Of a DNA stretch of 64,000 bases, positions 13,164 to 41,837 are shown piece after piece. Position numbers and translations under genes: made by a program. The stretch spans positions 12,152,001-12,216,000 of the forward strand of contig CP075493.1 in assembly GCA_021613535.1 (NCBI GenBank), written 5' to 3'. How positions within the stretch are numbered: the stretch's first letter is position 1; each line of letters opens with the position of its first letter. The stretch is from Adineta vaga. Lineage: Eukaryota; Animalia; Rotifera. A model generated the notes under the pieces. The model did no database searches. It saw only the letters and a program-made list of their open reading frames with translations, and had not been told where the DNA came from.

Positions 13164-13501
13164 TTTAAAAATGATCAATGGAATGTAATCTGAGTTTGAA
13201 GGAAATGTCGAGCACTTTTATACTACCGTCAATTACGCAAATATTTTTTTTGTTCGAGGTACGTCATGTTGGTTGATCGATGCTTCACTTACTTTTTCTC
13301 GGAATAAGTTTCCTCAGCAATGTTCTGTTTTTATTACTTTTTTTCCCCGAAAAACTCTATGCAAGAACAGTTATTTTGCAAACGCCAGGATGTATTTGTT
13401 TTTCTCTGTTCTTTTTATATAAAAGTTGTTGTCTACGCTGCGATGTACTTGTAGCGTAAAACACTTCAGAATTTCCAACATAATTCTCTAATTGGCCGGA
13501 T

Positions 13502-14734: not shown

Positions 14735-14840
14735 ATTCAGATTTGTTTTTTTTTCGCTTGAATTTAAAAGAAAAGAGAAAAATAGCTATATTGAAATACT
14801 TTATTAATTCTTTTTTTTTTGCATTCATTTGAAGATTAAA

Positions 14841-17800
14841 ATGAATAATACGACGACAGAATCGAACAAAATCAGTTATTGGTTTTGTCAGCAATGTGGT
14901 CGAAATTTCGAGCATGGTGAATTCTATTTCAATTGTGTTGTTTGTGATGATTACAATATCTGTAATGAATGTTTAATAATAATTCATCCATTGCATCCTC
15001 ATCGATTGATGCAAGAATTAGCTTATGGAAAAGAAGACATCTTCATAGATCGTCAAGAGAAAAGTATGGCTGATGGAATTGAAGCGACGATAGCTATGTA
15101 TCATGATCGTTATTGTTTGGGTGTACGTGATATCGATACGTATTCTTGGTTGACCTATCAGACAATAGGAGATCGATCAAGAAATTTTGGAGAAGGTTTG
15201 AGAGAAATCATTGAACCAGGTGGTTTTCTTGGTATTTGTGCAGGAAATCGACCTGAATGGATTATTACTGATTTTGCTTGTATTCTTCAGAATCTTATTA
15301 GTGTAACAATGTATTGTTTATTCAATGATTCAGAATTAACGTATATTATTAATAATACTAAAATATCCGTCATTGTTTGTGATCAACAAATGTTATCCAA
15401 ATTGATTCGGTTATTATCTCAATGTCCATCACTTCATCATCTTATATGTATGGATCCTATTCCTCAGTCTGATCAAGTTATATATTACATGGGCGATATT
15501 GAAGCACGTGGTGTAAATAAACAATATACAGCTGTTAGGGTGAATCCAAATGACTGTTCAACGATAATCTATACAAGTGGGAGTTCAGGATTTCCTAAAG
15601 GTGCAATGATTTCACATCGTGCTTATCAAACAACATTTTTACAGCGACATTGTGCGTTTCGTCTTGATCCAATCTATTTCTGTTATGAACCATTAGCATG
15701 GGTGACTGGCCGTTTTGCTGTTTTGAAAACTTTTCTTGCTGGAGGACGTACGGGATTTTCTTCAGGCAATGTTTCTCTTTTAATGGAAGAATTAGCTTTA
15801 GTTAGACCAACAAATTTTTCTGCTACACCGGCAATACGGAATAAAATCTATGCCGAATATAAAGCAGCTCTCTCATCAACATTGAAAGAAGGAGAAATTC
15901 TACAACAATTTTCTCGACTTATTCCTACACGATGTAAACGAATCAATGTCGGTGGCGCAATGATTAGTTCAACTGTCCTTGATTTTATTAAACGATGTTT
16001 TACACATTGCTCTGTTTATGAATCTTATGGAATCACTGAATGTGGATCGGTAGCATCGAACAATGTCATAAGAGATTCAATACAATATCGCCTTTTATCA
16101 ATTCCTGAAATGGGATATACTACAGATGACGAACCATTTCCTCGCGGAGAACTTCTAATTAAAAATGAAGAAATGTTTTCCGGCTATGTCAATGATCTTG
16201 AGGAAACACAAGCAGCTTTTACTGAGGATGGATTCTTTCGTACAGGTGATGTAGTTGAGATACGACTTCGTCCAAATGGAGCATCTTATGTGAATCTTAT
16301 CGATCGCAAAAAGAATTTTTTCAAACTTTCTCAAGGACAATATATTTCACCGGAATATCTTCAAACAATCTATATTCAAAGTCCATTCATTGAACAAATC
16401 TATATACATGGTGATCTTTTAGCAGATTCAATTTCAGCTGTTGTTGTACCAAACCGAGATTATGTACAAATATTTGCATCTGAACATCATTTAGAGACAT
16501 TGGATATGAATAACCCTCATCCAAAGTTGTACAATGCTATTTTAGAAAATCTTCGTTCGATCGCACAGAAAGAATCTCTTCGTCGGCACGAAATACCATC
16601 ACGATTGATTATTGATTTTCAATCTTTTACATCAGAAAATGGTTTGTTAACATCAACCATGAAACCATGCCGTCCAAAATTAGCTGCATATTATGGTGAA
16701 CAATTGAAGCAACCAAAGACACTTGAACAACGATTAAAAGATCTATTGAATGATAAAGAAAAAGATAATAACTTTATTCCAAGTGGTGGAGATTCCTTGA
16801 GTGCTATGCGTTTATCCCATCTGATCGAAAATAATCTTGGAATAACTGTACCAGTTAGTATACTTTTAGAACTAAACATGACTTTTGATCAATTAGCAGA
16901 GATAATTCAAGACCTAACTTTTATATCTTCTGCATCTCGTTCAACAATAGAAAAATTATATCATGATTCAGAATTATCGATAGATATCCCTATTGGAAAC
17001 AAATGCAAAGATACAAGTAAATATCCAACGATGATATTTATTAATGGAACAACGGGATTTGTTGGTGCATTTTTGTTAGCAGAATTATTAACGGTTTATT
17101 CTTCAGAGTGTAAATTTGTTTGTCTTATTCGATGTAAATTTTCAAAGATTCCATTAGATCGCATTCGTGAAAATCTACTCTTTCATAAAGTATGGAGAAA
17201 CGATCTTCAAGAACGAATTATTCCATTGCAAGGTGATTTAGAAGAACCGTATTTTGGATTAGATCATCCAACTTATCAAGCATTGGCTGAACAAATTGAT
17301 CTTATTTTTCATTGTGGTGCAACTGTTAATTTTGTTCTACCATGTAGTAAACTTTATCAATGTAATGTTTGTGGTACACAAGAAATTGTACGTTTCGCTA
17401 CGTACCAGAAAACAACTTATGTACCTATTCATTATATTTCAACGTTGAGTGTTCTGATACCAAATGTAAGTAAAGAAGTATCCGTTGATGAAATCCTTCC
17501 CGATGGTTTAATTACTGGTTATGCACAGAGTAAATGGGCAGGTGAAAGATTGCTGATGAAAGCGAATCATCTCGGTTTACCGATAACCATTTATCGTCTT
17601 GGATCAACTTGGGCTAGTACAGAAACAGGTGCCTGTAATCAAACTGATCTTCAGACATTTTTTTTCTTGGCAATGATGAAATCAAAGAGTTATCCTGAAA
17701 CGATGGTACATATAAATTTCCATGGATTACCCGTTGATTTTAGCACTAAGAGTATTGTTTATTTGAGTCAAATTCAGTCTGAGATAAGTGGAAATATCTA

Positions 17801-18109
17801 TCATTTTCAGAATCCAAATAGTGGAGTACAATTTGACGATATTATTGATGGTATGCGTCGATGTGATATTCATTTGCAGAGCATCTCATTGGAAGAATGG
17901 CGAAAAAAATTGAAAGCCACCGATGATGGAAATAGATCACTTGCACTATTAGTGATTATTTGAATGAAAATCTTTTTCAAGAAAAATGGGAAATATCTGC
18001 TGAACAATTTTATCATTCGATTTCTCAGTTACCTTTTCCAGCACTGAATGATTTGTATTTTATGAAATGGTTTAGTTTTATAAAAAATGAATTGCTTGAA
18101 TTAGTTTGA
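14841..18109 (+). CDS. NRPS-like carboxylic-acid-reductase architecture: ZZ zinc finger + adenylation + thiolation + reductase; -1 frameshift near 17945
   Basis: ZZ-like CQQC...CVVC...C..C...H.H. A domain YTSGSSGFPKG, YGITE, FRTGD. T domain GGDSL. R domain GTTGFVG, HCGA.VN, GYAQSKW, YRLG. The ORF stops at 17963, but the shifted frame continues TISDYLNE...LPFPALNDLYFMKWFSFIKNELLELV* to 18109. Confidence 0.9.
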
Positions 18110-22470: not shown

Positions 22471-25000
22471 TGATCCTCAACTTAAAAAGATTCTTCATTT
22501 TTATGCACATCAATGGGAAAAATATCGAATATCTACTCAAAAAGAAACAAATGCAAACGATGTTTATGAACTATTTCCTGTAAGTCTACATATACTGTTT
22601 TTTTTCCATTAACAATTTGAGTTAAGATAACAATAAATATTTGGAGAAAAGTTCTTTTTCAACCATTACATGAACAAATCACACAAGCTTGTCTTCAATT
22701 AATTAACTCTGAACGAAATAAACAAGTTATTCCTACTCATTTGATAGGTGCAGTTATTCAGAGTTATGGTATGAACAAAACCAAATGAATTAATTTTTTT
22801 TTATTACTATTCTATATTTCTAGTGGCATTGAATTCTGCATCATCAACTTTTAAAGTTCTTAAAAATTCATTTGGAACTCAATTTCTTGCAGGAACACAA
22901 AAATTCTATCGATTAGAAGCTATTAACTTTCTTATTGATCATTCTGTAACAGAATATCTGAAAAAAGTTGTAGCACGTTTCGACGAAGAAGAGCAGCGTG
23001 TTCGATCTTATTTGCATCCATCATTATTACAGCCGTTGATTGAAAATCTCGAAAATATTCTTATTCGTGATCGACTTGATTTAATTTACGACGAGGCAAA
23101 AATACTTATTCGTGATGAAAGATATCATGGTTTTGTATACCCAGAATATTCATAAAAGAATACAAATTTCATTTTCTCGATAGATTTAGCACTTCTTTTC
23201 AAACTAATCAGTCGTATACCAGATGCAGCTAATGGATTAAAGGAAATTGTTCGAAATCACATCTCAGAAATAGGTGTCAATTCCATTAAAAACATCAGTA
23301 AAACTACGATTATTGTAAGTATGACGCCAAAAAGTAGATCTGCACTTATCGCATTGCTAATTTTAAGGATCCAAAAGTTTATATTGACACAATTGTCGAT
23401 GTTCATCATAAATATTTCAAAGTTGTACTAGATGTTTTTAATAATGATCCAAAGTTCCTTGTTTCTTTTCATCAAGTAAGTGTAACTTGAATGAAAAAGA
23501 TTAATTTGTCCTTTTTGAAAATCTGATAGGCTTGTGGCCATTTTATTAATCAAAATGAAGTTATACAAATAGCTGGAATTTTAGTTTGATATTGTGATCT
23601 ATGGTTGAAAAAAGGGTTCGTTGAATGAAAAATCTTCATCCACCAATAATCGTTTTTCTTGTAGGAATACGACTAACAATGAAATCGATCTGGACAAGAA
23701 AATGAATGAGATTATGATTGTTTTCAATTATATTCAAGATAAAGATGTTTTTCTAAGTTTCTATAAGAGAACATTAAGAAAACGTTTACTTGGGCAATTG
23801 AGCATATCGGAAGATCATGAAAAAATGTTAATTTCGAAGTTAAAAGTAAATATTTTTATATAATCACATGCCATCTAATTGATTTCCTTACTTTTTTTCA
23901 GGACACATGTGGTTATGAATATACAGTCGAACTTGAACGAATGTATCAAGATTTTTGTATTAGTCAAACTATAACGGATGAATATCGAAATGATTGTGAA
24001 AGAAAAGAATCGATCTTAAAGGAGAGTTTGAGAGAAAAATGTTCTGTTGGCTTTTCTGTAATGGTTCTCAGTTCAAATATATGGCTACTTTCTGATTCAA
24101 CAAATCTTCTGCTACCAATTGAAGTAAAATTCTTTTTTTTTCTACGGATGAATCAATTGTTTTTCATTGTAGTTAAAGACAACATTTGATCAATTCAACG
24201 AATTTTATACGAATCGCCATCCTAATCGTAAATTAACATGGATTCATCAACAATCCAAAGGAGAATTAGAAATCTCTTTTCATCCTAAGAAATATCTATT
24301 ACAAGTAATTTTTAATGGAAATTGTTCATTCAATTTTTTTAGTTTCTTGCATAGGTGTCATTATATCAAATGACAATTTTATTACTGTTTAATCAAAATT
24401 CGAATTATTGGACAGTTGAGAAACTTTATGATGCAACATTGATCAATTCTGACATATTAAAACAGACACTTTGTAATCTGTCGAAGAATAAAATACTCAT
24501 TTGTGAAAATATTACTAATAAACAAGTTGAAGATTTAGACGAGACCAATATTGAAATGAATTATTCAATTAAATTAGCTGATCAATTCTACAAGTAATTC
24601 TCTACATCAGATATTAATTAAAAATAAAGCAGAATTTCAAATTTTTTAGTAAAAAATTCAAATTAAATCTAAATATACCACGAAAATCTAATGAACAAAA
24701 AAGTATTCAAGATGTTCACACGCAAATTGATGTCGATCGTGAAATGAATGTACAAGCAACAATCATTCGAATTATGAAAACTCGACAAACATTAAAATAT
24801 TCATTATTAATACAAGAAGTTCTTTCTCAAAATGTTTCATATTTCAAACCGGAAATTCCCATTATCGAAGTAAAATCAATCATTGTTTAAATGAATTTTT
24901 TATTAATCTTTAATTTTAGAAATGTATTACTTTGTTGATTGAAAAGGATTATCTTGCACGTTCATCCAATGAAAAAGATGTTTTACATTACTTAGCTTAA
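22470..25000 (+). pseudogene. Cullin-1-like copy B (N-terminally truncated, intact C-terminal neddylation domain) with premature TGA
   Basis: YLKKVVARFDEEEQRVRSYLHPS, YIQDKDVFLSFYKRTLRKRLL, RKLTWIHQQSKGEL, IIRIMKTR and LIEKDYLAR...YLA*. In-frame TGA at 23587-23589 in ILV*YCDL (canonical LARYCD). Confidence 0.8.
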
Positions 25001-25816: not shown

Positions 25817-27288
25817 TCATTTGGGTATATAACTTCGATGGCCACCGGGAGTCATATAATATTGTCCACCGCGTGTTCCTTCATAGATCGCGCGACCATT
25901 TGCAGCACCTCTCGTAGCCATATATTCACCTGTAAATCGACCACCATGTGCGCCTCCGATACCAGAACTAGTTGGTCGTGCTCTTTGAATTGGCATCTCC
26001 ATACCAGAGCCCATTGATGAAAAGGGCATGCCCATACCACCCATACCACAATTCACCGGTGACATACCACCACCACCTCCTCCTCCTATGCCCTGAAGTT
26101 GAGCCATGCGAGCCATCATACTGGAAAAATTGTTATCATCATTACTGTCTCTTCTTCGAGAAGATCGAGCTGAATTTAATTTACTTCTGAGCTAGAATTA
26201 AAAAGACAACAGATGGAGATAAATCGTTCTTTTCCTATGCTTACTTCTCTTTCACGTTGTTCTGCTTTGCGTTGTTCTTCACGAATCTTGATACGAAAAT
26301 AATAACTGTATTAACAAGATGATATAACTAATACATTAACTCACTTTTTGCATTTGTTCTTCATTTTTTTGTCTTTCCTCTTCTCGTGCCTAAAAATATA
26401 CGTACAAAATGAATCATTCATATGAAACAAAGACAGTATTCATACTTTTGTTGCTATGGCATCTTCTGCGGCTTTCTTTTTCTGACGTTCTTCTTCTTCT
26501 TCTCTCTGTTTTTCTTCCTGTCGTTTTCTTTCAATACGTTGATATTCAGCATTCGTATAACAATCTCCATTATTACTTCTGATCATACTATCAATAATTT
26601 CAATTAATTGATTGGTTTTTTTCTCTAACTGTTGACCACTTAATTTGTTATTGATTGCAAATGTTCGACCACCACATTCTCGAACTAAATCTCGTACATC
26701 AGGTGATGTATTAATAAATTCATTTAAATTTTGTCCTTCTTCCAATTTATCTTCACCAGTAAAAACCACAATGCAATATTTAATCGCACCTGATCCAAAA
26801 ATATGTCGAATAAAATCGACTGTCTGTTTTTCTTCTGGTGTAAATCGACCAACTTGAATAACAATCAAAAAAGCATGAACACCAGGTGTAGTCATTTCAA
26901 AAATTTGTGAAGCAATTTTTCGTTCAACCATTTCATTTGTCATCGTTCTATTGGTATCGAAAAATCCCGGTGTATCAACAACAGTAAGATTTTTCTGTTG
27001 ACCACCATTATCGTTATAGTTATATTGTCCAGATTTGCAATCGGTTGTAATTGATCTAGCTGATTGAGTAGCATAAAAAGCACTACGAGAATGTAATAAC
27101 GAATTGCCAGTGGAACTTTTTCCTGGAGTGAAGACTTTTTTTTAAAGAAAAGAAGAATTAAATCAGAGATTCACTAACCATTTCCTGTTTTTCCAACTAA
27201 GACTACACGCATTTGATTTTGTGACGAAGCCTAAAAGATCAAATACGATTTCTTTCAATGTTAGAAGTTATCTTTTACTTCATACCAT
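25817..27288 (-). CDS. AIG1/GIMAP-family GTPase + coiled coil + Gly/Met-rich linker + C-terminal 43-aa adaptor-like domain (6 exons)
   Basis: Spliced: M / ASSQNQMRVVLVGKTGNG / KSSTGNSLL...SITTDC...VVDTPGFFDT...PGVHAFLIV...RFTPEE...VVFTGED...CGGR..AINN. An E/K/R/Q coiled coil spans small exons, and the last exon ends ...GGQYYMTPGGHRSYIPK*. Confidence 0.92.
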
Positions 27289-27501
27289 CTTTTACTTGTG
27301 TATAATATTTGTATGCTAGTCAGTGCAAAAATTCATTGCAACATTTTATATTTATATATGTAAAGAAGAACGCTGCATCGGAGTATTCCATTAATGCTGC
27401 GTCATCAAAACGAAAGAAAAATTTACTGGGTATTTTTGTGGGTTTTTTAAAGAGTTATTACGCATGAGCATTTGTACTAATTCTTAACTAGAGAACTTCA
27501 C
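27289..27501. promoter_or_regulatory. Putative 213-bp bidirectional promoter between GIMAP and kinase
   Basis: Divergent ATGs at 27288 and 27502. Contains a TATA-like tract (~27345-27358), kB-like GGAGTATTCC (27380-27389) and bZIP-like TGCGTCA (27398-27404) and TTACGCAT (27458-27465). Confidence 0.5.
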
Positions 27502-28627
27502 ATGGTTAAAAATTGTCAATTAGGACCTATTCTTAGTTATGGATCTGAAGGAACGGTTCATTCAGGATCATGGCAAGGAACTATTGCAGCAATTAAAGTG
27601 CTCACCAATCAATATGCACGTCGTGCTGAAACTGAAATGAAATTAGTACGAAGTTTAAATCAAATTAACATTATTAAATATTATGATCTTGAATATGAAA
27701 AAGGCATTGCTTATTTATCGATGGAATTCATTACAGGTGGTAATCTTTATGAATTTATTCAAAAACAAGTTAATTCGAGTTCTTATTGGACAATTATTGA
27801 TCAAATCTTACAAGATGTCGCTCGAGGAATGGCATATCTTCATAACTCTCGGATCGTTCAAGGTGATTTAAAAAGTCATAATATTCTTCTACGTGAAAAT
27901 ACATATCAAGCAGTCATTTGTGACTTTGGTATTGCGAAATATCTAGATAATGATCATCAGGAAAAGAAACGTACTAATACAACGAAAGGTAAATTTATTA
28001 ACTTATCTATCATTTATATTTGTAGCAATGCATACTATAGGAACGATTCGATGGATGGCACCTGAACTTTGTACACCACCACCAGAACCATCATCATATT
28101 TATCAGATGTGTGGAGTTATGGTTGTACTATTTTAGAAGTAACAAGTGCTCATGAACCTTGGACAGAACAATATAATGATGATAGTCTACTCTTTCGAGC
28201 TCTTCAACGTAAAGAGAATGCATATTTGTTTGCTCGTATCTGTACGAATCAAACAGGACCATTACATCTACGTCAATTGCTAATACAATGTTGCGCATGG
28301 TCAAAAACTGATCGTCCACAATTTACAGATATTCTTCGACAATTCAACGTCGATGAGTATGCAGATTGTATGTCTGTTGATAGTACAGTCTCGAATGAAC
28401 AATCGTCGACTCTTGAAAGAAATGATGATTGCCATACAAAGATCCAGTATCAAACAAAACAAAATCGAAACATGGCTCAGACATCCACTAACAGTCATGG
28501 TGGACGTTTGACTGGAGAAGTATATACTAGTAAAGGTACAGCTAACGGTCGACCTATCTATGAAGGTGCTAAAGGTGGTTTGTATTATTTAACACCTAGT
28601 GGTGCAAAAGTGTATTTACATAAATAA
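27502..28627 (+). CDS. TKL-like Ser/Thr protein kinase (non-RD) with C-terminal 43-aa adaptor-like domain, 2 exons (27502-27988, 28041-28627)
   Basis: AAIK, catalytic loop VQGDLKSHNILL, DFG, GTIRWMAPE (spliced) and SDVWSYG. C-terminus is HGGRLTGE...GGLYYLTPSGAKVYLHK. Confidence 0.93.
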
Positions 28628-28657: not shown

Positions 28658-30482
28658 TCATTCATTTTTATGAAAACTACTCATAGACAAACATACATAA
28701 TGAATTAAGTAATCAAAATTGACATGAATGTTTCGTTTTTCTCTATAGAGTTCGGAACTTGTTCTTATGTGCCATGTAAAATTGTTAATCGGTATAACAT
28801 TTAGAGAGTTTGAATAACGTTGAACTGATGATGATGAATTCTCTACTCTGTATGGATTGTCAACATTGTTCTTCTTCAGGCGTTGTGTGTTTTTCTGAAA
28901 CCATTCAGTAGAAATATCTTTTGATGATACATGCTTATCAAATTCAAATGTAACACTTTTCAATTGTATGAATTTATCAATAATCGAACTCATCAATTCT
29001 TTGGATTGGATTACAACTTGTAAATGACGAATATTAACTAATGATTGAAAAAGTTCATGAATATTTTCATGATAAATTGGATACGCCGATTCATCTATAT
29101 CTCTTTCATATGGACGTTTTCTAGTCTTCCGCAAATAAAGAGAATGAATATGTTCAGGAAAAATGAATGCTGAATCGAGTGGTGTTAAAATCAATTGTTG
29201 AACATGACATGTATGTGTCAGTATTAATTGTATAATATCTATTTGTTGAGAAGTAAACGTTGAAAAGTCAAGTTTTTGTACTTGTTTTAAATCTATACAA
29301 GATGTAAGAGTATCGATTAATTCTCGACAATGTATAGAATCACACATTCCATTGTAAATCGCTAAAGATTTCGTTTTTGTAAAACAAAAATTAAATGATT
29401 TGGACTTTGGTATATAGTAGAAATATGAGTTCAACTGACGGTCAAAGAAGATTTTATTGTATAGATGCATTGGCACTGTTGATAATGGTGGATACGTGAA
29501 GAGAACATTAGATACCGATTGAGGACGAAAATGAGGCACTGAATAGATGATATGTCTATCGTTGAAAGAATCTTCACTATATGCAACGTACCAATGTTTT
29601 TCTTCAAACCAAAAATTCGAACGAAATTGTTCGAGTAAATCTTCTGGAGAATTTTCAAGTTAATCACGTATAGTAAATCGAAATCGAAATTTCTCGATGG
29701 ATGTTTTTCGTAGATATTCTTCCCATCGAATAGCATCGATTATATCCACTCTACCGAATCCTTCGATTGTCAACGATTTCAATCTAATCAATTTCATTAA
29801 ACAATTTTCAAGCACATCAAATGCTATGTTATGCATTCTAGAATTGAAAGAGAAATATAAAACTCCAACATCAATTGTATCTTCTTACCTAACTTGATTT
29901 CCAGCTGTGATAATGATGATAAGTTTTCACATAGACTTTCGAATTTCTCTGTAGGTATACCTCATTATCATAATTATCATCCTTAAAAAGTGAAACTTTC
30001 AAGTAAATTAATGAAGATATGTCAAGACATTGAGATATGTTAAAACTTTTGCTTGTTGAGAAATAATTTGGATAATGATTTCATCGAAATCTTCTTTCGG
30101 AAAATTTTATTGGAATGTCAACGACGATGTTTGACATGGTAAACTGATTTGCATGTTTCTCATGTAGGTGAAATCGATGGATTTTAAATTGATAAATTTG
30201 TTTTGAAAGTCAGGGAAGTGATAGAGAAAAAGTGGTATTTGATCAGGCATATATTCCGGATAATCGAAGAGAATGAACTTGTTGTGGCTGTAATTGAGTA
30301 CAAATCAAATCCAAATTCGATCGAGATATTTGACGAAAGTCAAGTTTCATTGAATAAGAACTGATAATTCGATCAAAACAGTGATTCAAATCATCGAAAC
30401 CATTGAAGATATCCAATCCGGTCAAATAGTCAAAAATTTCGTATATTATTTCGGCCGATAACAAGTTGAAAGATGACTTCAT
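28658..30482 (-). pseudogene. F-box-like/LRR-like lineage-expanded protein, frameshifted
   Basis: N-terminal FNLLSAEIIYEIFDYL..DIF..F..LN..F F-box-like motif. The coding signal shifts frame near 30250 (MPDQIPLF in another frame) and again near 29540. Confidence 0.65.
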
Positions 30483-31269
30483 ATTCGGACTTTTCCTCTC
30501 GTAATTCTTAACAAACAGTCAAAAGAGTTTTGTTATTTTAAAATGTCAGTAAATACATTGGACGACTTAGTCACATGTATACTTCTCTGATTTTCATTAT
30601 TCTCCTTCTTTTCTGCTATGTTAGAGAGCGCGTGAGAAAAAAAGAATGCAGTCTTCTTTCTGTTCTCTTGAGTTGATTTCTGTTTTTATTTGCTTTTAAA
30701 ACCGATGAAAATGAAAGTCAGGTTTCTAATATGCTGACATCCCAGACATAAACTAATCCACAACCACACCCGCACCACTTCTACTTGATTGATGTTGTTC
30801 AAAAAACCGCTAGTTAAATCATTTCGTTACTCTTATAAAAGATCAGCAGAAAGAACCCTATATTTTATTAAACAAAATGAGAATTTATAGACAAAAATGA
30901 CAAAAAAAAATTGTCCAGGGAAGAAATCGAGAACCTTCTTTTCGTCTGTACAAAGTATATAGTTAATCGAAAAGAAAGATTAGAATAAGACTGCATATGT
31001 GCCTGGACGAATATAGAGAAGAAGAATAGAAAAGAAAGAGAACGATGATTAGAATGATGGGGTATATGTAACCACTACGTTACAAATAAGATGTATCGTC
31101 CGCGACGAATTGTCGATTGACAAATTGTCCTAGCCCCGCTTTGTTATCATTACAAAGACTAAACAGAATGTGACTATATAGTTTCATAGATATAAAAGAC
31201 ATCTACTTTCTCAGTATGACCATCTTCTTAAACTTATCATTCTTTCATTCGATTGTGTTTTGTCTAAAG

Positions 31270-32100
31270 ATGAATTTGAAATTAATTCGAACATGGATTT
31301 TATCGTTTCTCATGTCACTTGGTATAATGCATCATTCACGAACACGAAAGATATCCCATCTTATCTTCATATTAGCTTTGTATGCTTCAATTGCCTTATT
31401 CGGTTACAAAGAATATGCTGTTTCTATCGTCATTTTATATACTTTGATAATGATAATTTGGACTTTATATGAGAGACGTTCATTATTTCAAACATATATC
31501 AATATGTATTATATTAAAAAGGATAATGCACTTGTCTTAAAACCATGGACACCAAAATGGAAAGAAGAATTTGAAAATGAGAAAGATCGTTTAAATAAAA
31601 TTATTTTATTCAAATGGAAACATATTTTTCACCAGGAACTCTCACCAGATGGTATCATTCATATTGGTTCGACTTCAATCGAAAACATTGCATTTGCTAA
31701 ACCAATTCATGATTTAGCACTTGCCATTACAACAGAACATGTACCAAAAGAGTTTTGTGAAGATTTACGAAAAGCTGGATATAAATATGTTGGTGCTGCT
31801 CCACATACGTTATCCTGTCAAGATCATTGGTTTTTTAATATTACACCACAGAATGAAATTGATACCAAAGGATATGGATTTGATCTTCACGTGTTATTAC
31901 CATCTGTTCATCAATGGCTTCGAGACATTATAAATTTCTGTCAATATTTAACAGAACATCCAATCGATCGAAATAAATATTCAAGTTTAAAAAGCGAAAT
32001 TGCACAAACTGAAACTGATATTCACTCGTATGCAATGAAAAAAAAGAAACTTGTGTTTATGTTATTAGAAAAATCACGAGAATGGGCTAAAACTAAATAA
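31270..32100 (+). CDS. GrpB/UPF0157-family nucleotidyltransferase-fold protein with N-terminal transmembrane segments
   Basis: W...FENEK..L, HIGSTSI...AKPIHDL, LHV, F..YL..HP..R..Y..LK and Y...K. Hydrophobic N-terminus; intronless. Confidence 0.88.
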   Translation: MNLKLIRTWILSFLMSLGIMHHSRTRKISHLIFILALYASIALFGYKEYAVSIVILYTLIMIIWTLYERRSLFQTYINMYYIKKDNALVLKPWTPKWKEEFENEKDRLNKIILFKWKHIFHQELSPDGIIHIGSTSIENIAFAKPIHDLALAITTEHVPKEFCEDLRKAGYKYVGAAPHTLSCQDHWFFNITPQNEIDTKGYGFDLHVLLPSVHQWLRDIINFCQYLTEHPIDRNKYSSLKSEIAQTETDIHSYAMKKKKLVFMLLEKSREWAKTK

Positions 32101-33239
32101 ATACCATTTAAAATAGAATTTTAATATATTATTCAAATAAAATAACAATTACAAATGTCTTTTCGTATCTTTCTCTTGGTCTCATTTTTGCTATAGGCTT
32201 CTTCGATGGAAGAGAAATAGGACAAGATCGTTTACTACTGTTTTCATATAATATAATCTCTTCAAAATGGTATCATCGTTGAATATTCTAGCATCGTATC
32301 AATTGCATTGAAATCTTTTGCTTGAGTATTCCAAATAAGTTGAACTACTATTTGACAACTGGCACTCATGGATTAGTTATGAAAAGAAATATCAATAACA
32401 AAAGTATCTATATCATTCATTTCAGATCTAGTTACAGCCATCGATTGTGACTGAAATGTTAGCGAAAGTCGATAGGGACCATAGTGTTCGTTTGAACGTG
32501 ATCGTTAGTATCGACAGAATTTATTATGATGTATAAAGCACATCGTCATAGTAAGATTGAAAAAAATTTCAATGAAAATGTTGCAAAACATAGTAAATAT
32601 ATGGGTTGATACAGAGAAATACTAAAGGAACTGCGGATTATATTATCTACAATTTAACAGATAAAAATTCGCTGTTGTATTTATTCAAGGTTGGACGCTG
32701 CTAAATAAAAAATGTACATGTGTGTCGTATTCGTTCTGTACAGAACAAGAAAGAAAAACATTGTTTTAACGCTTCTCATATGCTCACTTACTTGACAAAT
32801 TTATGCATCAGCGATCTATATATAAAGAGAGAGAGGTAGAAATGGTAGAAACATGTGCTCGCTATTCTAGTATCGAGTGATTATTTCGTTTATTTACATA
32901 TATAATATATTTGTACATTCAATATTGACTTACAAGTAATGTTCTTTGTGTAGTACTTAATCTTAACTTTTAGAAAGTGCTTTTGATTGTTTTTATTTTA
33001 AATAGAAAAATGGTAGGATAAGATAATTTTTCTATCATGAGAGTAAAATTAGGAATCTTAAGTGTAAAGATTTCGATAGTTCCAAGTTATTTACATTCAT
33101 TAAAATACTCGATTCGGTTTATATTCTCGTTTTTGACAAGGTGCAAAAGTCGGACACGATCAGCAAACAAATTATTTTGATCTTGTAGATAAACAGAAAA
33201 ATCAAGTCATTCAACTTATGTGCGTTTCGAACAATAAGC

Positions 33240-35336
33240 ATGTTCAATATACAGCGAACCTTTCATTATATATTAATCACTTGCGTATTAATCTTATGTC
33301 TAACTTACATGACATTAGTAAACAATTACAACGGATATAACCATCTGCAATACCAACATACAAGAAAACACAAGCACATATCGAAAGTTGATTTGAAATC
33401 TTTCCTATTATCAGTTCAAAATTATCCTAACGAGACTGACGATTGCATTTATCATGACAGAGAAAATGGATTGTTTCATCCAACAGTCAAACATCCACGT
33501 TATATTATTACGGGTGGTGCTGGTCTCGTCGGTAGTCATCTAGTCAAACGTTTGCGACAACAATATGAAGCAGATCAAATCAAAGTATTGGATAATTTAT
33601 CACGTGGTCGCCTACACAATTTACAATACAAAGATGGTACATGGGCTATCTCTACTCCTCGTGATTTTTGTCTCGTTGATCTTCGCAACATTCATCTTGC
33701 TTGCAAATATATCACAGGAGCTGATGTAATTTTTCATCTGGCAAATGTTGTTCCTAATGTAAATTTATCTAACTCATCTTACCTCCTAGATAATTTACGT
33801 ATCAATATCAATACATTGTATGCTACTCAAGTCAACAATATATCGAGCATGATCTATGCTCGTAGAAGATCTAGTTTGTCAACGTTTTCGGATAAGTCAG
33901 ACTCATCATATTATTGGTATAAGCGACTGAAAAAATATGAAGATAAACTACTACGATCTCATCATTTCGACATTGGTATAGTGCGTTTTCAAAACGTCTA
34001 TGGTCCTTACAATGATTTTACAGATACGTCCGATCATATTATAGAATCATTAATAAGAAAACTATTGCAATCTGAAAATAATCTTTTTATAATACCAGAA
34101 TTTGGAGAACAAGGTCGAGATTTTATCTATGTTGCTGATGTAGTCGATAGTTTGATGTTAACATATGAACAAGGAATGAATAAAGGACCGATCGATGTGG
34201 CAAGTGGAAGAAGTACATCAACCAAAGAACTTACAGATATCATTAGGAATGTTGCTAAAGCAAAATTAGGAAGAAAAATGAAGGTGATATTCGAATTTTC
34301 ACAAGTAGAGAACAATCAAGAAAAGATTATTGATTTAAGTCATGCAAACAATATTTTGGGATGGAAAGCAAAAGTTAGTTTGAAGGAAGGTATCTCGAAA
34401 ACTATGATTTGGATGAAAGAAAATCAGCATAAACCAAAGATACTTGTGATTATCATTGGTCAGATTCGTGGTGGTATTTTAGCATGGAAATCTCTACATA
34501 AGTTTTTTCTTCGACCATTCGATGCTCATTTAGCCTTCTATATATCAGGGTTTGAGATTAAAACATATTTACACGAAATAGCTCAGTATATTTGGATGGA
34601 ACCAGAATATGATGATTGGGGTATTATGTTCGATATGGTTGCTAAAGCATGTAACAATGAGAAAATTTTAGGAAAATGGAGAAACTATTGTAAACTACCT
34701 GGAATATATATGGGTGGAGTTAAAAATTGTTCACACGATTCACATTCATCGATTTCGTATGTATTTAGATGGTTACTACAACAGAAAATAAAAAAACTTC
34801 AATTACTTGATAAATATGATTGGTTCGTTTTAACAAGAGCTGATGAATTGTATCTTTGTCAACATTATGATTTTACAACAATGATTGAAGACGATGTATT
34901 GTTACCAACTGGTGAGCACTATAAAGGATGGTCTGATCGGCACTTAATTGGAAGATCATCTGTATTTATGAAAATCATCAATATAACAAATGAACTAGTT
35001 TGTAATCCTGATTATTGGTATAGGAAATTCAAAAGAAATGGCCGTGTGTATAACATTGAACAAACTCAAAAATTCATTTGGGCGGATATGAATCTACAAG
35101 TATCAGAATTACCAAGATCAATGTTTATTGTTAGAACACAGGATGATCCAGCATCATGGTCTACAGGTCTATTCCATCCACAATTGAATCATTTTGGTCT
35201 CAAAGTAAAATATCCAATGGAATTGTGGTCATCGCATAGACATTGCAAAATCAACAACATAACGAATGTCTTGAAATCTCTTCGTCATTATCATGGAGAT
35301 ATACTGAACGATGTTATTTCTGATTATGTCGAGTAG
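33240..35336 (+). CDS. Signal-anchored NAD-dependent nucleotide-sugar epimerase/dehydratase fused to a glycosyltransferase-like domain
   Basis: ITGGAGLVGSHL, LDNLSRG, FHLA, YxxxK (YYWYK), RFQNVYGP, RDFIYVADVV and LGWK...L.EG. The C-domain has IIIGQIRG, YDWFVLTRADE and GWSDRH. Intronless. Confidence 0.85.
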   Translation: MFNIQRTFHYILITCVLILCLTYMTLVNNYNGYNHLQYQHTRKHKHISKVDLKSFLLSVQNYPNETDDCIYHDRENGLFHPTVKHPRYIITGGAGLVGSHLVKRLRQQYEADQIKVLDNLSRGRLHNLQYKDGTWAISTPRDFCLVDLRNIHLACKYITGADVIFHLANVVPNVNLSNSSYLLDNLRININTLYATQVNNISSMIYARRRSSLSTFSDKSDSSYYWYKRLKKYEDKLLRSHHFDIGIVRFQNVYGPYNDFTDTSDHIIESLIRKLLQSENNLFIIPEFGEQGRDFIYVADVVDSLMLTYEQGMNKGPIDVASGRSTSTKELTDIIRNVAKAKLGRKMKVIFEFSQVENNQEKIIDLSHANNILGWKAKVSLKEGISKTMIWMKENQHKPKILVIIIGQIRGGILAWKSLHKFFLRPFDAHLAFYISGFEIKTYLHEIAQYIWMEPEYDDWGIMFDMVAKACNNEKILGKWRNYCKLPGIYMGGVKNCSHDSHSSISYVFRWLLQQKIKKLQLLDKYDWFVLTRADELYLCQHYDFTTMIEDDVLLPTGEHYKGWSDRHLIGRSSVFMKIINITNELVCNPDYWYRKFKRNGRVYNIEQTQKFIWADMNLQVSELPRSMFIVRTQDDPASWSTGLFHPQLNHFGLKVKYPMELWSSHRHCKINNITNVLKSLRHYHGDILNDVISDYVE

Positions 35337-36061
35337 CTTTTACTTTTTCACAGCTACGTAATTTATGAATAGGACATACATATAACGAACATTTGTTAGC
35401 TAAAAGTAATTAATAAATACTCCAAGCAAATAGAACATGAATAAATGATAATGAAGCATAATGAATATTTTTTACAAGGAATGTTTGATGATTAAAAGTA
35501 ATTTCTCAACATAACATTCAATAATATGAATGATGGTCTTCAAATAAAGATTTTATACTATTTAACGAATAGATAATAATTAGATTCGATTTTTTTGTGT
35601 ATATAATTATTCTCTTATAGAGTTCAATAGTTCTTTTAAAAAATTAGATGTGACAAAAATATCTTTTCACATTCATATGATATAAAATCCTTTCTTTCTT
35701 ATTCATTATCGAAAATATAACCAAATGCACAATATATGTTAGAAAATTATGCATTTTCTACATTACTTTCGTTTCATATCGAAATACACGTGGAAATCGT
35801 TAATGAAAAGGAAAAAATGCTTATTATCTAATGAATTTTAATCGATAAAAATACATGACAATAATATCGTTTGATATACGATCCAATCATCCAAAACCTG
35901 TATCGCACAAAAAAAGATGAGGTAGAGCAGTCACTGAAGATTGCATATAAGCGTAAAGGACAGGTAAGAAAAGGTACAAGGACAAATATATTTTTTGATC
36001 AATATTTTTTCTATACAGTGTCATATTGTTTCTCACAACATTGTTATCATTGATTTGAAGC

Positions 36062-39000
36062 ATGTCGATGGAAGTTTTAGAAATATCAGATGAAATTGTA
36101 TCTATTGAATTAGATGTTCCAGAACCATTAGAACAAACTTTAGTTGAAACAGAAATCAAATCAAAAGATACACCGTACTGTGTAATTCTTGTCACAAGTA
36201 TTATACTTACAATTATTACGATGATTATTGCTATTGTAATTGTTTGTTTAAATTCACCAAAGCCTCGTAAGTTTATTTTATTTTAACAATATTCATATTT
36301 GTATATTTCAATGTTCTATTTAAGGTCATACTTGTCGATCAAGTTTCAAAACTATTACTGATGCAAGTTCATCATCACACGATTCACATCCAAGTTCAAT
36401 TGTTGCTGGTGATTTAAATCATGATGATATATTAGATGTTGTGGTTGTTAATTCCGGTACGAATTCGATTGGAGTATTTCTTAATTTTGGTAATGGCACA
36501 TTTCTATCACAAACGGTTTGGCCAACAGGAGATCCATCGACACCATTAGCAATTGTTCTCGGCGATTTCAATGGTGATACACATGTAGATATGGCTGTTG
36601 CTAATTATGATACACATATGATTAAAATATTTTTTGGATGGGGAAATGGTTCATTTGGTGATCAAATGGCATTTTCAACAGGCATTTCTCGTCCAATAGC
36701 ATTAACAACTGCTGATTTAAATAAAGATGGAAGATTAGATCTTGTTGTTGCTAATAATGGGACTCACGATATAAGTCTATTTTTTGGTACTGGAAATTAT
36801 TCATTTAGCAATCCAATTATTTATTCTACTGGTTATGATTCATTACCATATTTTATTGCTATTAGTGATTTAAATAAAGATTATAATCAAGATATTATTG
36901 TAGCTAATTATGGTACACATAATATTGGTGTATTTTTCGGTTATGGGAATGGTAGTTTCACATCACAAAAAACTTATTCGACGGGTCTATATTCACATCC
37001 ATATTCCATAACCATTAATGATTTTAATAGTGATGAACATTTAGATATTGCCGTAGCAAATTCGGGTACAAATAATATCGGTATATTTCTTGGTTTCGGC
37101 AACGATACATTTACACTACAAACAATCTATACAACTTATCCTGGATTACGTCCACAATCAATTATTGCGGGTGATTTCAATCAAGATAATAATTTAGATA
37201 TTGCTGTTGCAAATTATCAAACAAATAATATAAGTATCTTGATTGGAACAGGAAATGGTAGTTTTCTTTCACCTGTTATGCATTCAACTGGGATTGATTC
37301 CATTCCATCCGATATAACTGTTGGAGACTTTAATCTTGACAATCAATCGGATATTATTGTTGCAAATTATGGTACAAATAGTATCTTAGTACTTGTTGGA
37401 TATGTTATGACACAAGCACAAATTCCTACCGTCTATTCAGCTGGTGATGGTGCAATTCCTTATCAGATAAGTACTGGAGATCTTAATAATGATACATATC
37501 TCGATCTTATCGTTGTTAATTCTGGCAGTGGTAGCATTGGTGTATTTATTGGAATTGGTAATGGAAGTTTTCATGAACAAATATCTTATCCATCTGTGAA
37601 TCAATCGGATGTCCGTGCGCTTGTCCTCATTGATTTAGATCATGATGAACGATTAGATGTTATTCTTGCTCATTTTAATGATGAAACCTTGGGTATAATG
37701 TATGGTTATGGCAATGGGTCTTTTACCCGTGTCGTTACACTTTTCGTTGGTAGTCCAGCATCACCACGATGGATAACTGTCAACGATTTCAATAATGATC
37801 ATCATCCTGATATTGTCTATACTGATCAAATTACTGGTAATTTCGGTATTTTCCTAGGTTTTGGAAATCGAACATTTGGACCTTTAATGAGACATCTCTT
37901 TGGATCTCAATCACAATTGATTGGTGTTGATTCCGGTGATTTTAATCATGATGGTAATTTAGATCTTGCTATTGCTGATTATGGTATTGGTAATATTGGT
38001 GTTTTTCTTGGTTTTGGTAATGGTAGTTTTATATTAGCTAGTCTTTCAGCTACCGGAGATAAATCACACGTATCGGCTGTAACTATTGCTGATTTAAATT
38101 ATGATACTCATCTGGATTTTGTCGTTGGTAATTCTGCGACGTAATATTGGTGTCTTCTTTGGTTTTGGAAATGGTAGTTTTACTAAACAACAATCCTATT
38201 CAACAGGTTTAAGTTCTGGTTCAATTTGGATTAGTATTGCTGACTTGAATAATGATGGTTCAGTCGATCTAGCTGTTGCTAATCCTTTTACGAATAATGT
38301 TGGAATATTTCTTGGGGATCATCAAGGAAATTTTACAAATCAATCAACTTATTCGACGGGTCCTGATTCTAAACCATATTCAATTGCTGTTGGTGATTAT
38401 AATCGAGATGGTCGATTAGATATTGCTGTAGCTAATTTTGGAATAAATCAGGTAGCTGTATTACTTGGACATCCAACACAAGCATCTCGTCAAAATCAAA
38501 CAACAAATATTACACCAATTTTGTTAGGAGATTACTATACAAATTTTCGAATAGAAACAAATTATCCAACAGGTTCAAGTCCTCGTCCATATTCACTTGT
38601 AACTGGTGATTTAAATAATGATACACAAATAGATATTATTGTTGCTAATTCAGGAGATGAAAATCTCGGTATTATCCTTGGCTATAATAATGGTAATTTC
38701 GCTTCGGAAATCCGTTATCCCATCGGTATTAGTTCAAATCCAACACAGATTATTATTAACGATTTTAATAGAGATAATCACTTGGATGCTGCTGTCACTG
38801 ATAGTAATGATAATAGTGTGATAGTATTGTTAGGAAATGGTAATGGGACATTTCCAACAAAATTAACATATTTACTTGATTATGAATCAAATCCAAGTGC
38901 ACTTGCTGTTGATTATATGAATGATGATGTATATTTAGATTTGATCGTTACTAATGAAAATAAAGGTACAGTGGGTGTATTCTTTGGACTGGAATATACA

Positions 39001-40695
39001 TTTTTCCAACGTCAAATACCATGTGATGCCGGTAAAGATACTAGTCCGAATGGATTAGCCATCGGTGATTTTAATAATGATGGTAATTTAGATTTAACCG
39101 TTTCATTGTATTATGCTGGAAAAGTTGGCGTCTTTCTTGGAAATGGCAATGGTTCCTTTGCACCAATTAGTACCTATTCCGAATTACTCTATTCACAACC
39201 TCGTGCTATTACCGTTGGCGATGTTAATCAAGATGGTAAATTGGATATTATTGAAATAAAACGTGGTATCAATAGTATTTCGATTTTATTAGGCTACGGA
39301 AATGGAAGTTTTGCCAGTCCTCTTCTGTATTCTTCCGGTGTTGATACACGTCCACGTTCGATTGCTGTTGGCGATTTTAATCAAGATGGTTGTCTCGATA
39401 TTACCGTGGCAAATTATGGTACAAATAATGCTGGTGTCTTTTTTGGACATTGCAATGGTTCGTATGATCCTGTATTGCAATTAGATACTGGCAAGAGTTC
39501 ACGTCCTAATTCAGTCACTATTTTCGATGTTAATAAAGATACTTATCCAGATATAATCGTTGCTAATAGAGCTGTCGACCAAGTTGGAATATTTTTTAGC
39601 AATAGTAACAAAAGTTTTTCCAATCAAATGATTTTATCGACTGGTACGGCATCGTCACCTGTTTATGCTATCGCTCGAGATTTCGATAACGATGGGAAAG
39701 TAGATCTTGCTGTTGGAAACTATGGTACGAATACTCTTGTAATATTCTATGGTTACCATAATGGTACTTTCGGTGATACTCGTACATTTTCAACTGGAAC
39801 TAATATACATCCAGAACAATTAGAAGTCGGCGATTTTAATAATGATAATCAATTGGATATTATTACAATTGATGCTAATAGTTTATATATAGGTATCTTT
39901 TTTGGTTATACAGATGGAACATTTGCTAGTATATCATTAATTCTTGTCGAACAAATTGGAGCTATTCCTGGTTTTATCGCTCTTGGCGATTTCAATAACG
40001 ATAAACATTTAGATATCGGTCTAGCTGAATACGGTAATAATTATGTACAAATTTATCTTGCTAATGGTACAAAACCTTTCACTGGACAAACAACATCTTA
40101 TAGTGTTGGTCGAAATTCTTTTCCATGTGCATTAGCTATTGCTGATTTCGATAATGACACTCATTTAGATATTGCTACTGCAAATTATGGTTCACATAGT
40201 ATTGGCATATTACTTGGACATGGAAAACGATTATTTTCAAATGTAACACTCTATTCTACAGGTAGTAATTCTTATCCAGTGGCATTAGTTGCTAGTGATT
40301 TCAATAATGATTCTATCATTGATATTATTGTTGCTAATCCAATGACCGATAATATTATGATATTTATTGGTCTCGGTAATGGAAAATTCTCATTTTTAAT
40401 TAGTTACTCAATGGGTGATAATTCTAAACCAGTATCAATTGCAATCGGTGATTTTAATCGTGATTCGAAGAAAGATCTTGCACTAGCCAATTATGGTACG
40501 AATAATGTCGGTATACTTTTTGGTACAGACAATGGAACGTTTATCAATCAAACATGGCATCCTTTAGGTTATAACTCTCGACCAAATTGCGTTGTTTTCA
40601 AAGATTTAAATAATGATGGTTGGGAAGATATTGCTGTAGCAACGTATGAAGAAGGACTTATTAAAATTCTTTTAAATCTTTGTCCAAAAATGTAG
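36062..40695 (+). CDS. Type II membrane FG-GAP/VCBS repeat protein (~25 repeats), intron 36267-36324, frameshift near 38140
   Basis: N-terminal TM (VILVTSIILTIITMIIAIVIVCL) followed by many GDFNxDxxxDIxVAN...GNGSF repeats. The repeat register continues across the two ORFs at GNSAT/NIGVFFG. Confidence 0.88.
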
Positions 40696-41837
40696 TAAAC
40701 CGGTTTACATTCTCTTTACTTTGTATATAAAATTTAGTAAAACTTTTGTGTATTTTTTTCGATTTTTGATTACATATATCTATTGTTTCAGTGAATTGAA
40801 ACAAATAAACTTTTATCAATTACATCATTGTTTGCACTTCATATTATCTTTTTTGTTTTTGATTCACGTCTATCGAAATCGGTATCTAGGTAAATAACAA
40901 ATGATTGATTCTATAGCATTTCAGTATTGCGTATTTTGTTTATTGACATTTATCGATTTCTTATCTCATGCTAATAATTATAAATATTTCAATGTATCCG
41001 AGATATTTACACAGTTGAATTGGTCGAAGAGTCTATTAACGTTTGAAAAATTTGTATATATTCATACCGTTATCAAGGACACATATCAATAATATACAAG
41101 AAAAGATAAGCACGTACATAAATACACAACATATTCTTTCATATATTCATCATTACCATTGAGAAAAATTACAAGATGAATGTTAGTAACCACATTTCAA
41201 CAATAATTTTTTTTTACATATCATTGATACATCTTGTGTGATTGATGCTTGGCACCATTTGTTTCTTTCACAGAGACTATTTATGCATCAAGCGTTATCC
41301 TTCTTTTTGTCATCACTTTTACTTTCTTTCTCCTTACTTTTTTTCCTTCTTCCAGTGCGTATCGTCTATCCCGCATGTTTTTTTCTTTTTCTTTCGTCCG
41401 ATAATCTTTTTCTTCTGTCTTATGTTTGGAAAACATGGATAGAACAAAAATAGATCTATTGCATCAAAACATAGAATTGTATATGGATTACGATTAGGAA
41501 GTTGTATATAGATATGTATTTGTGAACTGATTCAAATAAACGAGGAGAAATAAGAAAGATCGATATAGATTTTTTTCTCTCTTTTTTTTATTGTAGTAAG
41601 ATATATCGATGACGTATGATAAGTCATAATTCACTCAGTGCACATGATTTTTTATCGCTCTTTACAATGTATGAATAATCAAATATCTGTATTTTTGTTG
41701 CTATTTTTATAGACAATTAATTTTAAATAACACTTCATGTGCTCTATATAAACGACGCAATTCTGATCGGATTGAAACAAAACAACTCAAAAGTATATTT
41801 TTTCATTATTATTATTATTTACTTGCATCTATTCGTT

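Follow-up and report, generated by a model that had tools for sequence, protein, structure and literature searches.

A head-to-head AIG1 GTPase and non-RD kinase gene pair, conserved across bdelloid rotifers, with PF08789 tails on both products

The AIG1-type GTPases of vertebrates, the GIMAPs, carry a C-terminal membrane anchor that is the localisation determinant of the family. Non-RD kinases, which lack the Arg of the catalytic-loop motif HRD, are said to have been associated with innate immune signalling (the IRAK/Pelle/receptor-like kinase (RLK) group) by Dardick and Ronald in 2006, and non-RD status correlates only statistically with immune function. In the adjacent-gene signalling of fungi and bacteria, a nucleotide-binding leucine-rich repeat receptor (NLR) and its effector share HET-s, PP, sigma or BASS amyloid motifs. 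The family PF08789 was reportedly found by Iyer, Balaji, Koonin and Aravind in 2006 fused to Ser/Thr kinases and to a 2-Cys domain in chloroviruses, and we take kinase plus PF08789 to be its founding architecture. Here we describe a locus of the bdelloid rotifer Adineta vaga in which an AIG1/GIMAP-type GTPase gene and a non-RD kinase gene lie head to head and encode proteins that both end in a PF08789 domain. It occupies positions 25817 to 28627 of a 64,000-nucleotide stretch of contig CP075493.1 (positions 12,152,001 to 12,216,000; assembly GCA_021613535.1), referred to below as the window.

The tail domain, both enzyme families and the fusion of a kinase to this domain are already known. What appears to be new is the AIG1–PF08789 architecture and the bdelloid-wide head-to-head pairing of an AIG1 GTPase with a non-RD kinase. 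A first-pass annotation of the window, made by reading the sequence alone, had called the pairing undescribed, and we likewise found no description of the pair or of its expression in the searchable literature.

A GTPase gene and a kinase gene in divergent orientation

The AIG1/GIMAP-type gene (25817–27288, minus strand) has six exons, at 27288–27286, 27230–27179, 27122–26446, 26389–26345, 26286–26245 and 26191–25817, which together encode 397 codons and a stop. Exon lengths and phases, checked by hand on the sequence, give a coding total of 1194 nt with no in-frame stops, and the exon order agrees with that of the Rotaria sordida protein P0173 (tblastn). Here and below, exons were searched singly rather than joined, and the full-length queries were the database proteins P0001, P0042 and P0173. 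Exon 3 encodes the G domain (26446–27120, minus strand; Pfam AIG1, PF04548, E=3.2e-48, 164 bits against a cutoff of 27), the solved relatives of which in the PDB are GIMAP4, GIMAP7, GIMAP1, GIMAP2 and GIMAP5, with E-values from 6.5e-35 for GIMAP4, the nearest, to 1e-24. The G1 (GxxGxGKS) and G3 (DTPG) motifs can be read in the translation, the P-loop GKTGNGKS crossing the exon 2/3 junction, and a TGED motif stands at the presumed G4 position. The end of exon 3 and the mini-exons 4 and 5 encode a highly charged segment rich in Glu, Lys and Arg (26245–26560, minus strand), which is expected from its translation to be helical or coiled-coil. The last exon begins with a linker that is basic and then Gly/Met-rich and of low complexity (25949–26191, minus strand; translation of the open reading frame (ORF) 25817–26119) and closes with the tail (25820–25948, minus strand). 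A hydrophobic C-terminal membrane anchor is absent from the translated protein.

The TKL-like (tyrosine kinase-like) protein kinase gene occupies 27502–28627 on the plus strand and has two exons, the first at 27502–27988 and the second running from 28026 or 28041 to 28627. The choice depends on two candidate acceptors of its single intron: 28026, used in our analysis, yields 362 amino acids and inserts five extra residues in the activation segment, and 28041, used in the NCBI model P0001 (I4U23_003969 of A. vaga), yields 357. P0001 matches the whole of exon 1 and the 195 C-terminal residues of exon 2, and its tail is 100% identical to that of the window. Pfam recognises Pkinase on both exons (92.8 bits on exon 1 and 43.8 bits on exon 2), as it does PK_Tyr_Ser-Thr. 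The protein is laid out as a kinase domain, a linker rich in Ser, Asn and Thr, and the tail (28496–28624, plus strand). In each of the two tails, the last 28 residues constitute the PF08789 match and the first 15 form an N-terminal β-strand extension.

The kinase has QGD in place of the catalytic-loop motif HRD (27859–27867, plus strand), and is therefore non-RD, with the His replaced too. The catalytic Asp, Lys and Asn, the VAIK-like β3 Lys, the DFG motif and the APE motif are all retained in the sequence. All eight full-length bdelloid kinase copies for which the motif search succeeded read QGDLKSHN without variation; the fragment P0184 reads QGDLKSQN, and the pattern gave nothing for Rotaria socialis P0176 (not inspected by eye) or for two partial models. 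Because this octapeptide recurs in all eight copies and the exon encoding the N-lobe is constrained (see below), the absence of the RD Arg is a conserved state and not a product of decay. The nearest non-bdelloid kinases are TKLs (MAP3K13-like and plant HT1/STY; identity at most 33%) and the nearest solved structures are RAF kinases; the label TKL-like follows from these relatives and structures and is not a formal kinome classification.

Between the two genes lies a spacer of 213 bp (27289–27501), presumably a bidirectional promoter. This distance holds from ATG to ATG if the AIG1 gene starts at 27288–27286, an ATG that directly precedes a GT splice donor; an alternative in-frame ATG at 27212 would make the distance 289 bp. 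Both genes have short spliceosomal introns, and the G+C content of the window is about 30%. The first-pass annotation had read the locus as an intact AIG1/GIMAP gene and an intact non-RD kinase gene, divergently transcribed 213 bp apart. The GTPase assignment is confirmed by the Pfam score, the GIMAP4 match and the stop-free exons, and the kinase assignment by the matches on both exons, the retained catalytic residues and QGD; the spacing stands provided that the upstream ATG is the start.

The tails belong to the PF08789 family

The tails of the two proteins align without gaps and are identical at 25/43 residues, at the positions that the first-pass annotation had given for them. At the DNA level they share 80/129 nucleotides, distributed over the codon positions as 29/43 (first), 33/43 (second) and 18/43 (third), and one tail finds the other by tblastn with E=1.3e-15. 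Given this E-value, and because only 18 of the 43 third positions agree, the match is far beyond chance and reflects conservation at the protein level, as the annotation had proposed in preference to a recent DNA copy.

A novel 43-residue domain can be rejected: the tail is a member of the known and widespread family PF08789 (PBCV_basic_adap, 'PBCV-specific basic adaptor domain'). Searched alone, the AIG1 tail scores 22.3 bits and the kinase tail 21.3 bits against a cutoff of 20.4; within the whole exon, the scores drop to 19.7 and 17.0 bits, respectively. A reciprocal test supports this assignment. A hidden Markov model (HMM) built from six bdelloid tails (alignment A1), of the kind that the first-pass annotation had suggested, was run against 1.84 billion representative proteins and retrieved 513 clusters at E<=1e-3, 75 of them at E<=1e-10. 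Among the best 149 of the 513 clusters, to which all counts of partners, positions, copies and prefixes below refer, 103 themselves match PF08789, with a best E of 2.1e-23. A word-indexed homologue search with the tail of an A. vaga AIG1 paralog returned three proteins only and says little about other bdelloid carriers.

The carriers span viruses, bacteria and eukaryotes, and the domain sits on unrelated, unlinked proteins, a distribution that the first-pass annotation had named as one that would speak against its own interpretation. Partner domains include Pkinase (6 cases), HNH (4), N_formyltrans_C (3), AIG1 (2), Endonuclease_NS (2), DnaJ (2) and SH3_3 (2), together with single cases of SNase, cyclophilin, UDPGP and RepA_C; the architectures of ten proteins were confirmed individually. 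A copy of the domain lies no more than 12 residues from the C terminus in 125/149 proteins, and 116/149 have two or more copies. PF08789 is thus a promiscuous module, usually C-terminal and often repeated. Among these 149, the combination of AIG1 with PF08789 was seen in bdelloids only. About a third of these top matches (52/149) have a signal-peptide-like N terminus, and are for this reason probably small secreted bacterial proteins. The S-x-G-S-A-N-G prefix of the bdelloid tails is present in 50/149 proteins. Since DnaJ proteins, one of them from a diatom, carry it, the extended form of the tail is not confined to rotifers: the marine-metagenome DnaJ proteins P0083 and P0116 end in S-x-G-S-A-N-G-R, and one member of a DnaJ cluster, a DnaJ fragment, is annotated as coming from the diatom Fragilariopsis cylindrus. 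The strongest profile match by far (228 bits) is P0015, a protein of 3223 residues that combines at least 15 PF08789-type units with a UDP-glucose pyrophosphorylase domain at its C terminus.

We modelled the kinase tail with AlphaFold2 from an alignment of 102 sequences (A4). The model has four β-strands at residues 4–10, 19–23, 29–32 and 38–41 and a mean pLDDT (predicted local distance difference test) of 80.6. PF08789 is a β unit of about 26 residues rich in Gly, Tyr and Arg/Lys, extended here by one N-terminal strand into a small predicted four-stranded sheet. When the model was compared with predicted viral structures, the top matches were mostly chlorovirus proteins, including some labelled as PBCV adaptors and the nicking endonuclease Nt.CviQII. 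These matches have template-modelling scores (TMq) of 0.70–0.74, probabilities of 0.97–1.0 and root-mean-square deviations of mostly 0.9–1.2 Å (2.5 Å for the nickase), with E-values of only 0.08–0.5 for this very short query, and both sides of the comparison are models.

The tails are also basic, each bdelloid copy having 6 Lys+Arg against 2 Asp+Glu, and contain 5–6 aromatic residues. The one experimental lead that we found comes from Paramecium bursaria chlorella virus 1 (PBCV-1), in which A278L and A282L, each a kinase with PF08789, belong to a set of six basic proteins that accompany the DNA of the virion; that study regards them as putative DNA-binding proteins (PMC3281028). Given the DNA association of these chlorovirus kinases, the nucleases among the partner domains and the basic composition of the tails, the most plausible ligands of the tail are polyanions, DNA and RNA among them; the fold match with Nt.CviQII agrees with this idea.

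Both genes are under purifying selection

We estimated ω, the ratio of non-synonymous to synonymous divergence, by the Nei–Gojobori method; the first-pass annotation had suggested such an estimate for the tails, in which synonymous sites prove to be near saturation. For the kinase tail, ω was 0.06–0.20 against its orthologs, and for the AIG1 tail it was 0.15 against the R. sordida ortholog and 0.41 against the unpaired A. vaga paralog described below. The G domain gave 0.20–0.27 and the exon encoding the kinase N-lobe 0.13–0.24. All parts of both genes are therefore under purifying selection.

Each type of tail also has its own signature. Kinase tails always read R-L-T-G-E-[VI]-[YF]-T-S and mostly end in V-Y-L-H-K; AIG1 tails always read R-F-T-G, usually followed by [YF]-M-A-T, and end in [KR]-[ST]-Y-x-x-x. 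The two tails thus diverged before the sampled bdelloid lineages split and, because each type keeps its own signature in all species, have undergone no homogenisation or gene conversion since.

The pair is conserved across bdelloids

The first-pass annotation had proposed that synteny of the pair be examined across species. We found the divergent pair with both tails at every bdelloid locus examined, save on contigs that were too short and at one A. vaga paralog, covering Adineta, Rotaria, Didymodactylos and two metagenomic bdelloids. In R. sordida, one locus (L001) has the AIG1 gene at 4117–5679 (minus strand) and the kinase gene at 6001–7156 (plus strand), and a second locus (L013) has another head-to-head pair. 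The same arrangement is present in R. socialis (L009/L010), in Adineta steineri (L014, where the contig end cuts the AIG1 tail), in a bdelloid from JGI metagenomes (L002–L005) and in one from ENA metagenomes (L015). In Didymodactylos carnosus (L011), tblastn reveals an unannotated AIG1 gene at 3916–3248 with its tail at 3008–2880, and the kinase starts at 4447; a further D. carnosus contig (L007) is too short upstream to show whether AIG1 is present and was left out. The spacers at the other loci measure about 180–530 bp between called or tblastn-inferred gene ends. By the NCBI taxonomy, the pair spans three genera and two orders, Adinetida and Philodinida.

The genes around the pair differ by type of locus. 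It is flanked by a cullin-like and an F-box-like gene in the window, and elsewhere by PARG, by 7tm_1 with a rhamnosidase, by peptidase C1 with a UAA transporter, or by Glyco_transf_92. Both flanks have thus been replaced, and the pair has been retained at no fewer than eight loci. A profile search of 228 kb of bdelloid DNA detected the tail nowhere but at the 3′ ends of these AIG1 and kinase genes, and no third copy was found in the 64-kb window. AIG1 with PF08789 was seen only next to this kinase or its relic, leaving aside P0029, on a 2.9-kb contig, whose neighbours were not examined. These comparisons suggest a divergent pair that is specific to bdelloids, was already linked before the sampled lineages diverged and has stayed so.

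Maximum-likelihood trees of AIG1 exon 3 and kinase exon 2 contain an identical split into two groups, with 98/97 support in each tree. One group consists of the window, A. steineri, the JGI metagenome and the first R. sordida locus, and the other of the second R. sordida locus, R. socialis, the ENA metagenome and D. carnosus. The tree of kinase exon 1 is compatible with this split but does not resolve the positions of D. carnosus and the ENA copy. Since each group includes one R. sordida pair, and the trees are largely concordant, the pair was probably duplicated as a unit, with both copies keeping both genes and both tails.

The paralog on another A. vaga chromosome (CP075497; L006) is an intact AIG1 gene with a tail (P0042, I4U23_031431). 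Upstream of it, in divergent orientation, lies a kinase remnant of about 230 bp (7587–7806 of that locus), which covers residues 11–73, contains a frameshift and in-frame stops and ends before the catalytic loop. The orphan G domain has an ω of 0.27 and the tail is intact.

Two observations concern the R. sordida loci. At the second (1217–4569), two AIG1 G domains stand in tandem on the minus strand (4401–3781 and 2626–2033), merged into one model of 621 amino acids with a tail at the distal end only; this could be a tandem duplicate or a protein with two G domains. About 6 kb downstream of the pair at the first locus, next to a microbial-type PARG gene, lies a second, closely related kinase fragment (12859–13156), which borders a stretch of N in the scaffold and could therefore be an artefact of assembly.

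Genomic surroundings

In the window, the upstream neighbour of the pair is a multi-exon cullin-like gene (22823–24890, plus strand) that lies tail to tail with the AIG1 gene. Downstream is a series of ORFs (28658–30482, minus strand) with an F-box-like N terminus and a 293-residue part without a Pfam match. Farther away, Pfam identifies long, intact and apparently intronless ORFs for two EEP nucleases (11150–12151 and 42925–43716), an NRPS-like (non-ribosomal peptide synthetase-like) AMP-binding/PP/NAD_binding_4 reductase (14829–17963), GrpB (31216–32100), an epimerase (33240–35336), two FG-GAP repeat proteins (36441–40695) and LicD (41739–42614). The first-pass annotation had described the region as full of pseudogenes; this does not hold for the neighbours that we scanned, which are long intact ORFs with clear Pfam domains. 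By their bacterial- and fungal-type domains, the surroundings (11150–17963 and 31216–43716) have the look of a bdelloid region of the usual kind, with many horizontally acquired genes.

Possible functions of the pair

We consider it about an even call that this conserved and probably co-regulated pair uses its generic PF08789 tails as targeting modules for a common ligand, which would bring both enzymes to one site. We favour such targeting because the domain occurs mostly on unpaired proteins, is typically terminal and repeated, and is linked to DNA-associated and DNA-cutting proteins. In such a scheme, the 213-bp spacer would act as a bidirectional promoter from which the GTPase and the kinase are co-expressed. 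The tail of each enzyme would then bind the common ligand, so that both accumulate at the same place, and in the GTPase it would take the place of the membrane anchor at the C terminus of the vertebrate proteins. At the common site, the kinase may act on the GTPase scaffold or its clients, or the scaffold may activate the kinase. The first-pass annotation had offered the tail either as a common targeting module or as a homotypic interaction module; the first option fits the conservation data, and a private, novel module does not fit the presence of PF08789 on many unrelated proteins. A role of the pair in immunity or the stress response is suggested only by analogy with GIMAPs and non-RD kinases.

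Several observations weigh against targeting to a common ligand. The PF08789 scores of the bdelloid tails are marginal. A search of PDB sequences with the tail profile returned nothing better than E=0.12 (a Nop10 hairpin), and a Foldseek search of PDB structures with the tail model returned nothing below E=1; no structure has been solved for the family. The chlorovirus evidence concerns the association of whole proteins with DNA and not binding by the domain, and no ligand of PF08789 has been demonstrated. To judge from the signal-peptide-like N termini of 52/149 carriers, the ligand need not be an intracellular nucleic acid. An alignment of the intergenic region from three loci (one of which, L002, was covered in part) revealed weak conservation, confined to the sequence immediately before the kinase ATG; it does not justify the claim of a promoter motif, and retention of a spacer of 200–450 bp could be partly neutral. 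Finally, the orphan A. vaga locus has a GTPase that does without an adjacent kinase. Adjacency is not obligatory, since this locus keeps a constrained AIG1 gene and tail beside a decayed kinase; either AIG1 is functional alone, or the intact kinase of the window serves both A. vaga loci in trans.

One alternative, which we regard as unlikely, is that the tails couple the two proteins directly. Homotypic or heterotypic β-sheet pairing would join tail to tail, and GTP-dependent oligomerisation of AIG1 would recruit, cluster and activate the kinase. Both partners of the conserved pair carry the domain, which no other gene in the 228 kb of bdelloid DNA does, and the two types of tail have been distinct yet recognisably paired since before the bdelloids split. 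The predicted fold, a small open β-sheet, would suit such pairing, as would the frequent presence of two or more copies per protein, as if copies packed together. However, the domain is common on single, unpaired proteins, including secreted bacterial ones, for which ligand binding fits better than partner recognition, and the orphan AIG1 gene keeps a constrained tail without a neighbouring kinase.

That there is no functional coupling at all seems to us similarly improbable. The generic tails would be used separately, and the arrangement would persist because the spacer is a very small target for rearrangement or because the genes share promoter elements. The promiscuity of the domain, the survival of the GTPase at the locus that lost its kinase and the weak intergenic conservation can all be explained in this way, and kinases with PF08789 exist elsewhere, in chloroviruses and in the unrelated kinases P0016, P0019, P0075 and P0136 (21–30% identical). 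Yet the pair survives at eight or more loci with both flanks replaced, and both daughter loci in R. sordida kept both genes and both tails. Moreover, AIG1 with PF08789 was seen in bdelloids only, where it adjoins this kinase or its relic (with the above proviso for P0029), and the extended HGGR-x-TGE form of the tail is specific to the two partners.

A bolder proposal, and in our estimate a quite improbable one, is a bdelloid-only sensor and transducer. AIG1 would oligomerise through its tail on a polyanion acting as a danger signal (foreign or damaged nucleic acid, for example), the kinase tail would dock onto this array by β-sheet pairing, and clustering would activate the non-RD kinase without phosphorylation of its activation loop. 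If true, the pair would be an animal counterpart of the fungal and bacterial adjacent-gene signalling through shared motifs, and would provide the first mechanistic role for PF08789.

Capture from a virus or another foreign source concerns the origin of the pair and is compatible with any mechanism of coupling. It is very doubtful that the kinase with its tail, or the tail alone, was taken from a chlorovirus-like nucleocytoplasmic large DNA virus (NCLDV) or other foreign donor and then copied onto AIG1. Chlorovirus kinases are the basis on which Pfam defined the family, chlorovirus proteins give the best fold matches, genes of bacterial or fungal type abound in the window (GrpB, the NRPS-like reductase, FG-GAP and LicD) and the kinase clade has no non-bdelloid relative closer than 33% identity. 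By contrast, the nearest non-bdelloid kinases are eukaryotic TKLs (MAP3K13-like, HT1 and RAF), in a comparison that did not directly include viral kinases; both genes have spliceosomal introns; and other eukaryotes, too, have the extended S-x-G-S-A-N-G tail, as in the diatom-type DnaJ. Recent local DNA duplication or gene conversion, which the mere 2.5 kb between the tail copies might suggest, is practically excluded by the agreement of only 18/43 third positions, by the proportion of synonymous differences (pS) of 0.69 between the two window tails and by their separate signatures in Adineta, Rotaria and Didymodactylos.

Many canonical components of immunity are missing from bdelloids, which come into contact with much foreign DNA. 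Were common targeting or any other coupling of the two enzymes real, the locus would represent a compact module of two genes and one tail in animals about whose innate immunity very little is known. It would also give PF08789 its first cellular role and provide a GIMAP in which the membrane anchor has been swapped for another targeting device. Should the two enzymes prove not to be coupled, the locus would still be a clean example of microsynteny kept over long evolutionary time in genomes otherwise known for rearrangement. In both cases, the supposed novel 43-residue domain is corrected to a known family.

Comparison with described systems

The tails come closest to the PF08789 domains of the chlorovirus kinases PBCV-1 A278L and A282L. 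They share the core G-R-x-I-Y-x-G-x-[RK]-G-G-x-Y-Y-x-x-x-x-G-x-K-x-Y of a small β domain rich in Gly, Tyr and basic residues, the C-terminal position and the fusion to a Ser/Thr-type kinase, and they match by HMM and, less surely, by predicted fold. The bdelloid tails differ in adding the N-terminal strand H-G-G-R-[LF]-T-G-E outside the Pfam match, and in being single in each protein rather than arrayed. Their host is an animal, their kinase domain forms a distinct non-RD TKL-like clade, and the domain is also present on an AIG1 GTPase.

With vertebrate GIMAP1, GIMAP2, GIMAP4, GIMAP5 and GIMAP7, the rotifer GTPase has in common an AIG1-type G domain with an intact P-loop and DTPG, followed by a C-terminal extension that is helical (by expectation only in the rotifer protein). 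In place of a C-terminal hydrophobic membrane anchor, however, it has the Gly/Met-rich linker and PF08789, and its gene is fixed head to head with a kinase gene. The kinase resembles the immune non-RD kinases of the IRAK/Pelle/RLK group in its TKL neighbourhood, in missing the HRD Arg wherever the motif is readable and in keeping the other catalytic residues. Unlike them, it has the His replaced as well, to give QGD, and it has no death, TIR or leucine-rich repeat (LRR) domain.

The first-pass annotation had likened the locus to the paired NLRs of plants. This analogy holds for the arrangement: as in RGA4/RGA5 and RRS1/RPS4, linkage is conserved and the genes diverge from a short spacer. It fails for the proteins, in which Pfam finds AIG1, kinase and PF08789 domains only; the rotifer pair has no NB-ARC or NACHT domain, LRR or integrated decoy, and its partners are a GTPase and a kinase that share a C-terminal domain, not homologous NLR bodies. 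The signalling pairs of fungi and bacteria also differ from the rotifer pair. There, the shared motif links the N terminus of an NLR to the C terminus of an effector, whereas both rotifer copies are C-terminal and neither protein is an NLR; furthermore, the rotifer element is a widespread globular domain, predicted to form a compact sheet and common on unpaired proteins. Even with these defining features absent too, the fungal and bacterial systems would, by analogy, be closer to the rotifer locus than plant NLR pairs are: in both, neighbouring and otherwise unrelated genes share a short, β-forming terminal element that is rich in Gly, aromatic and polar residues.

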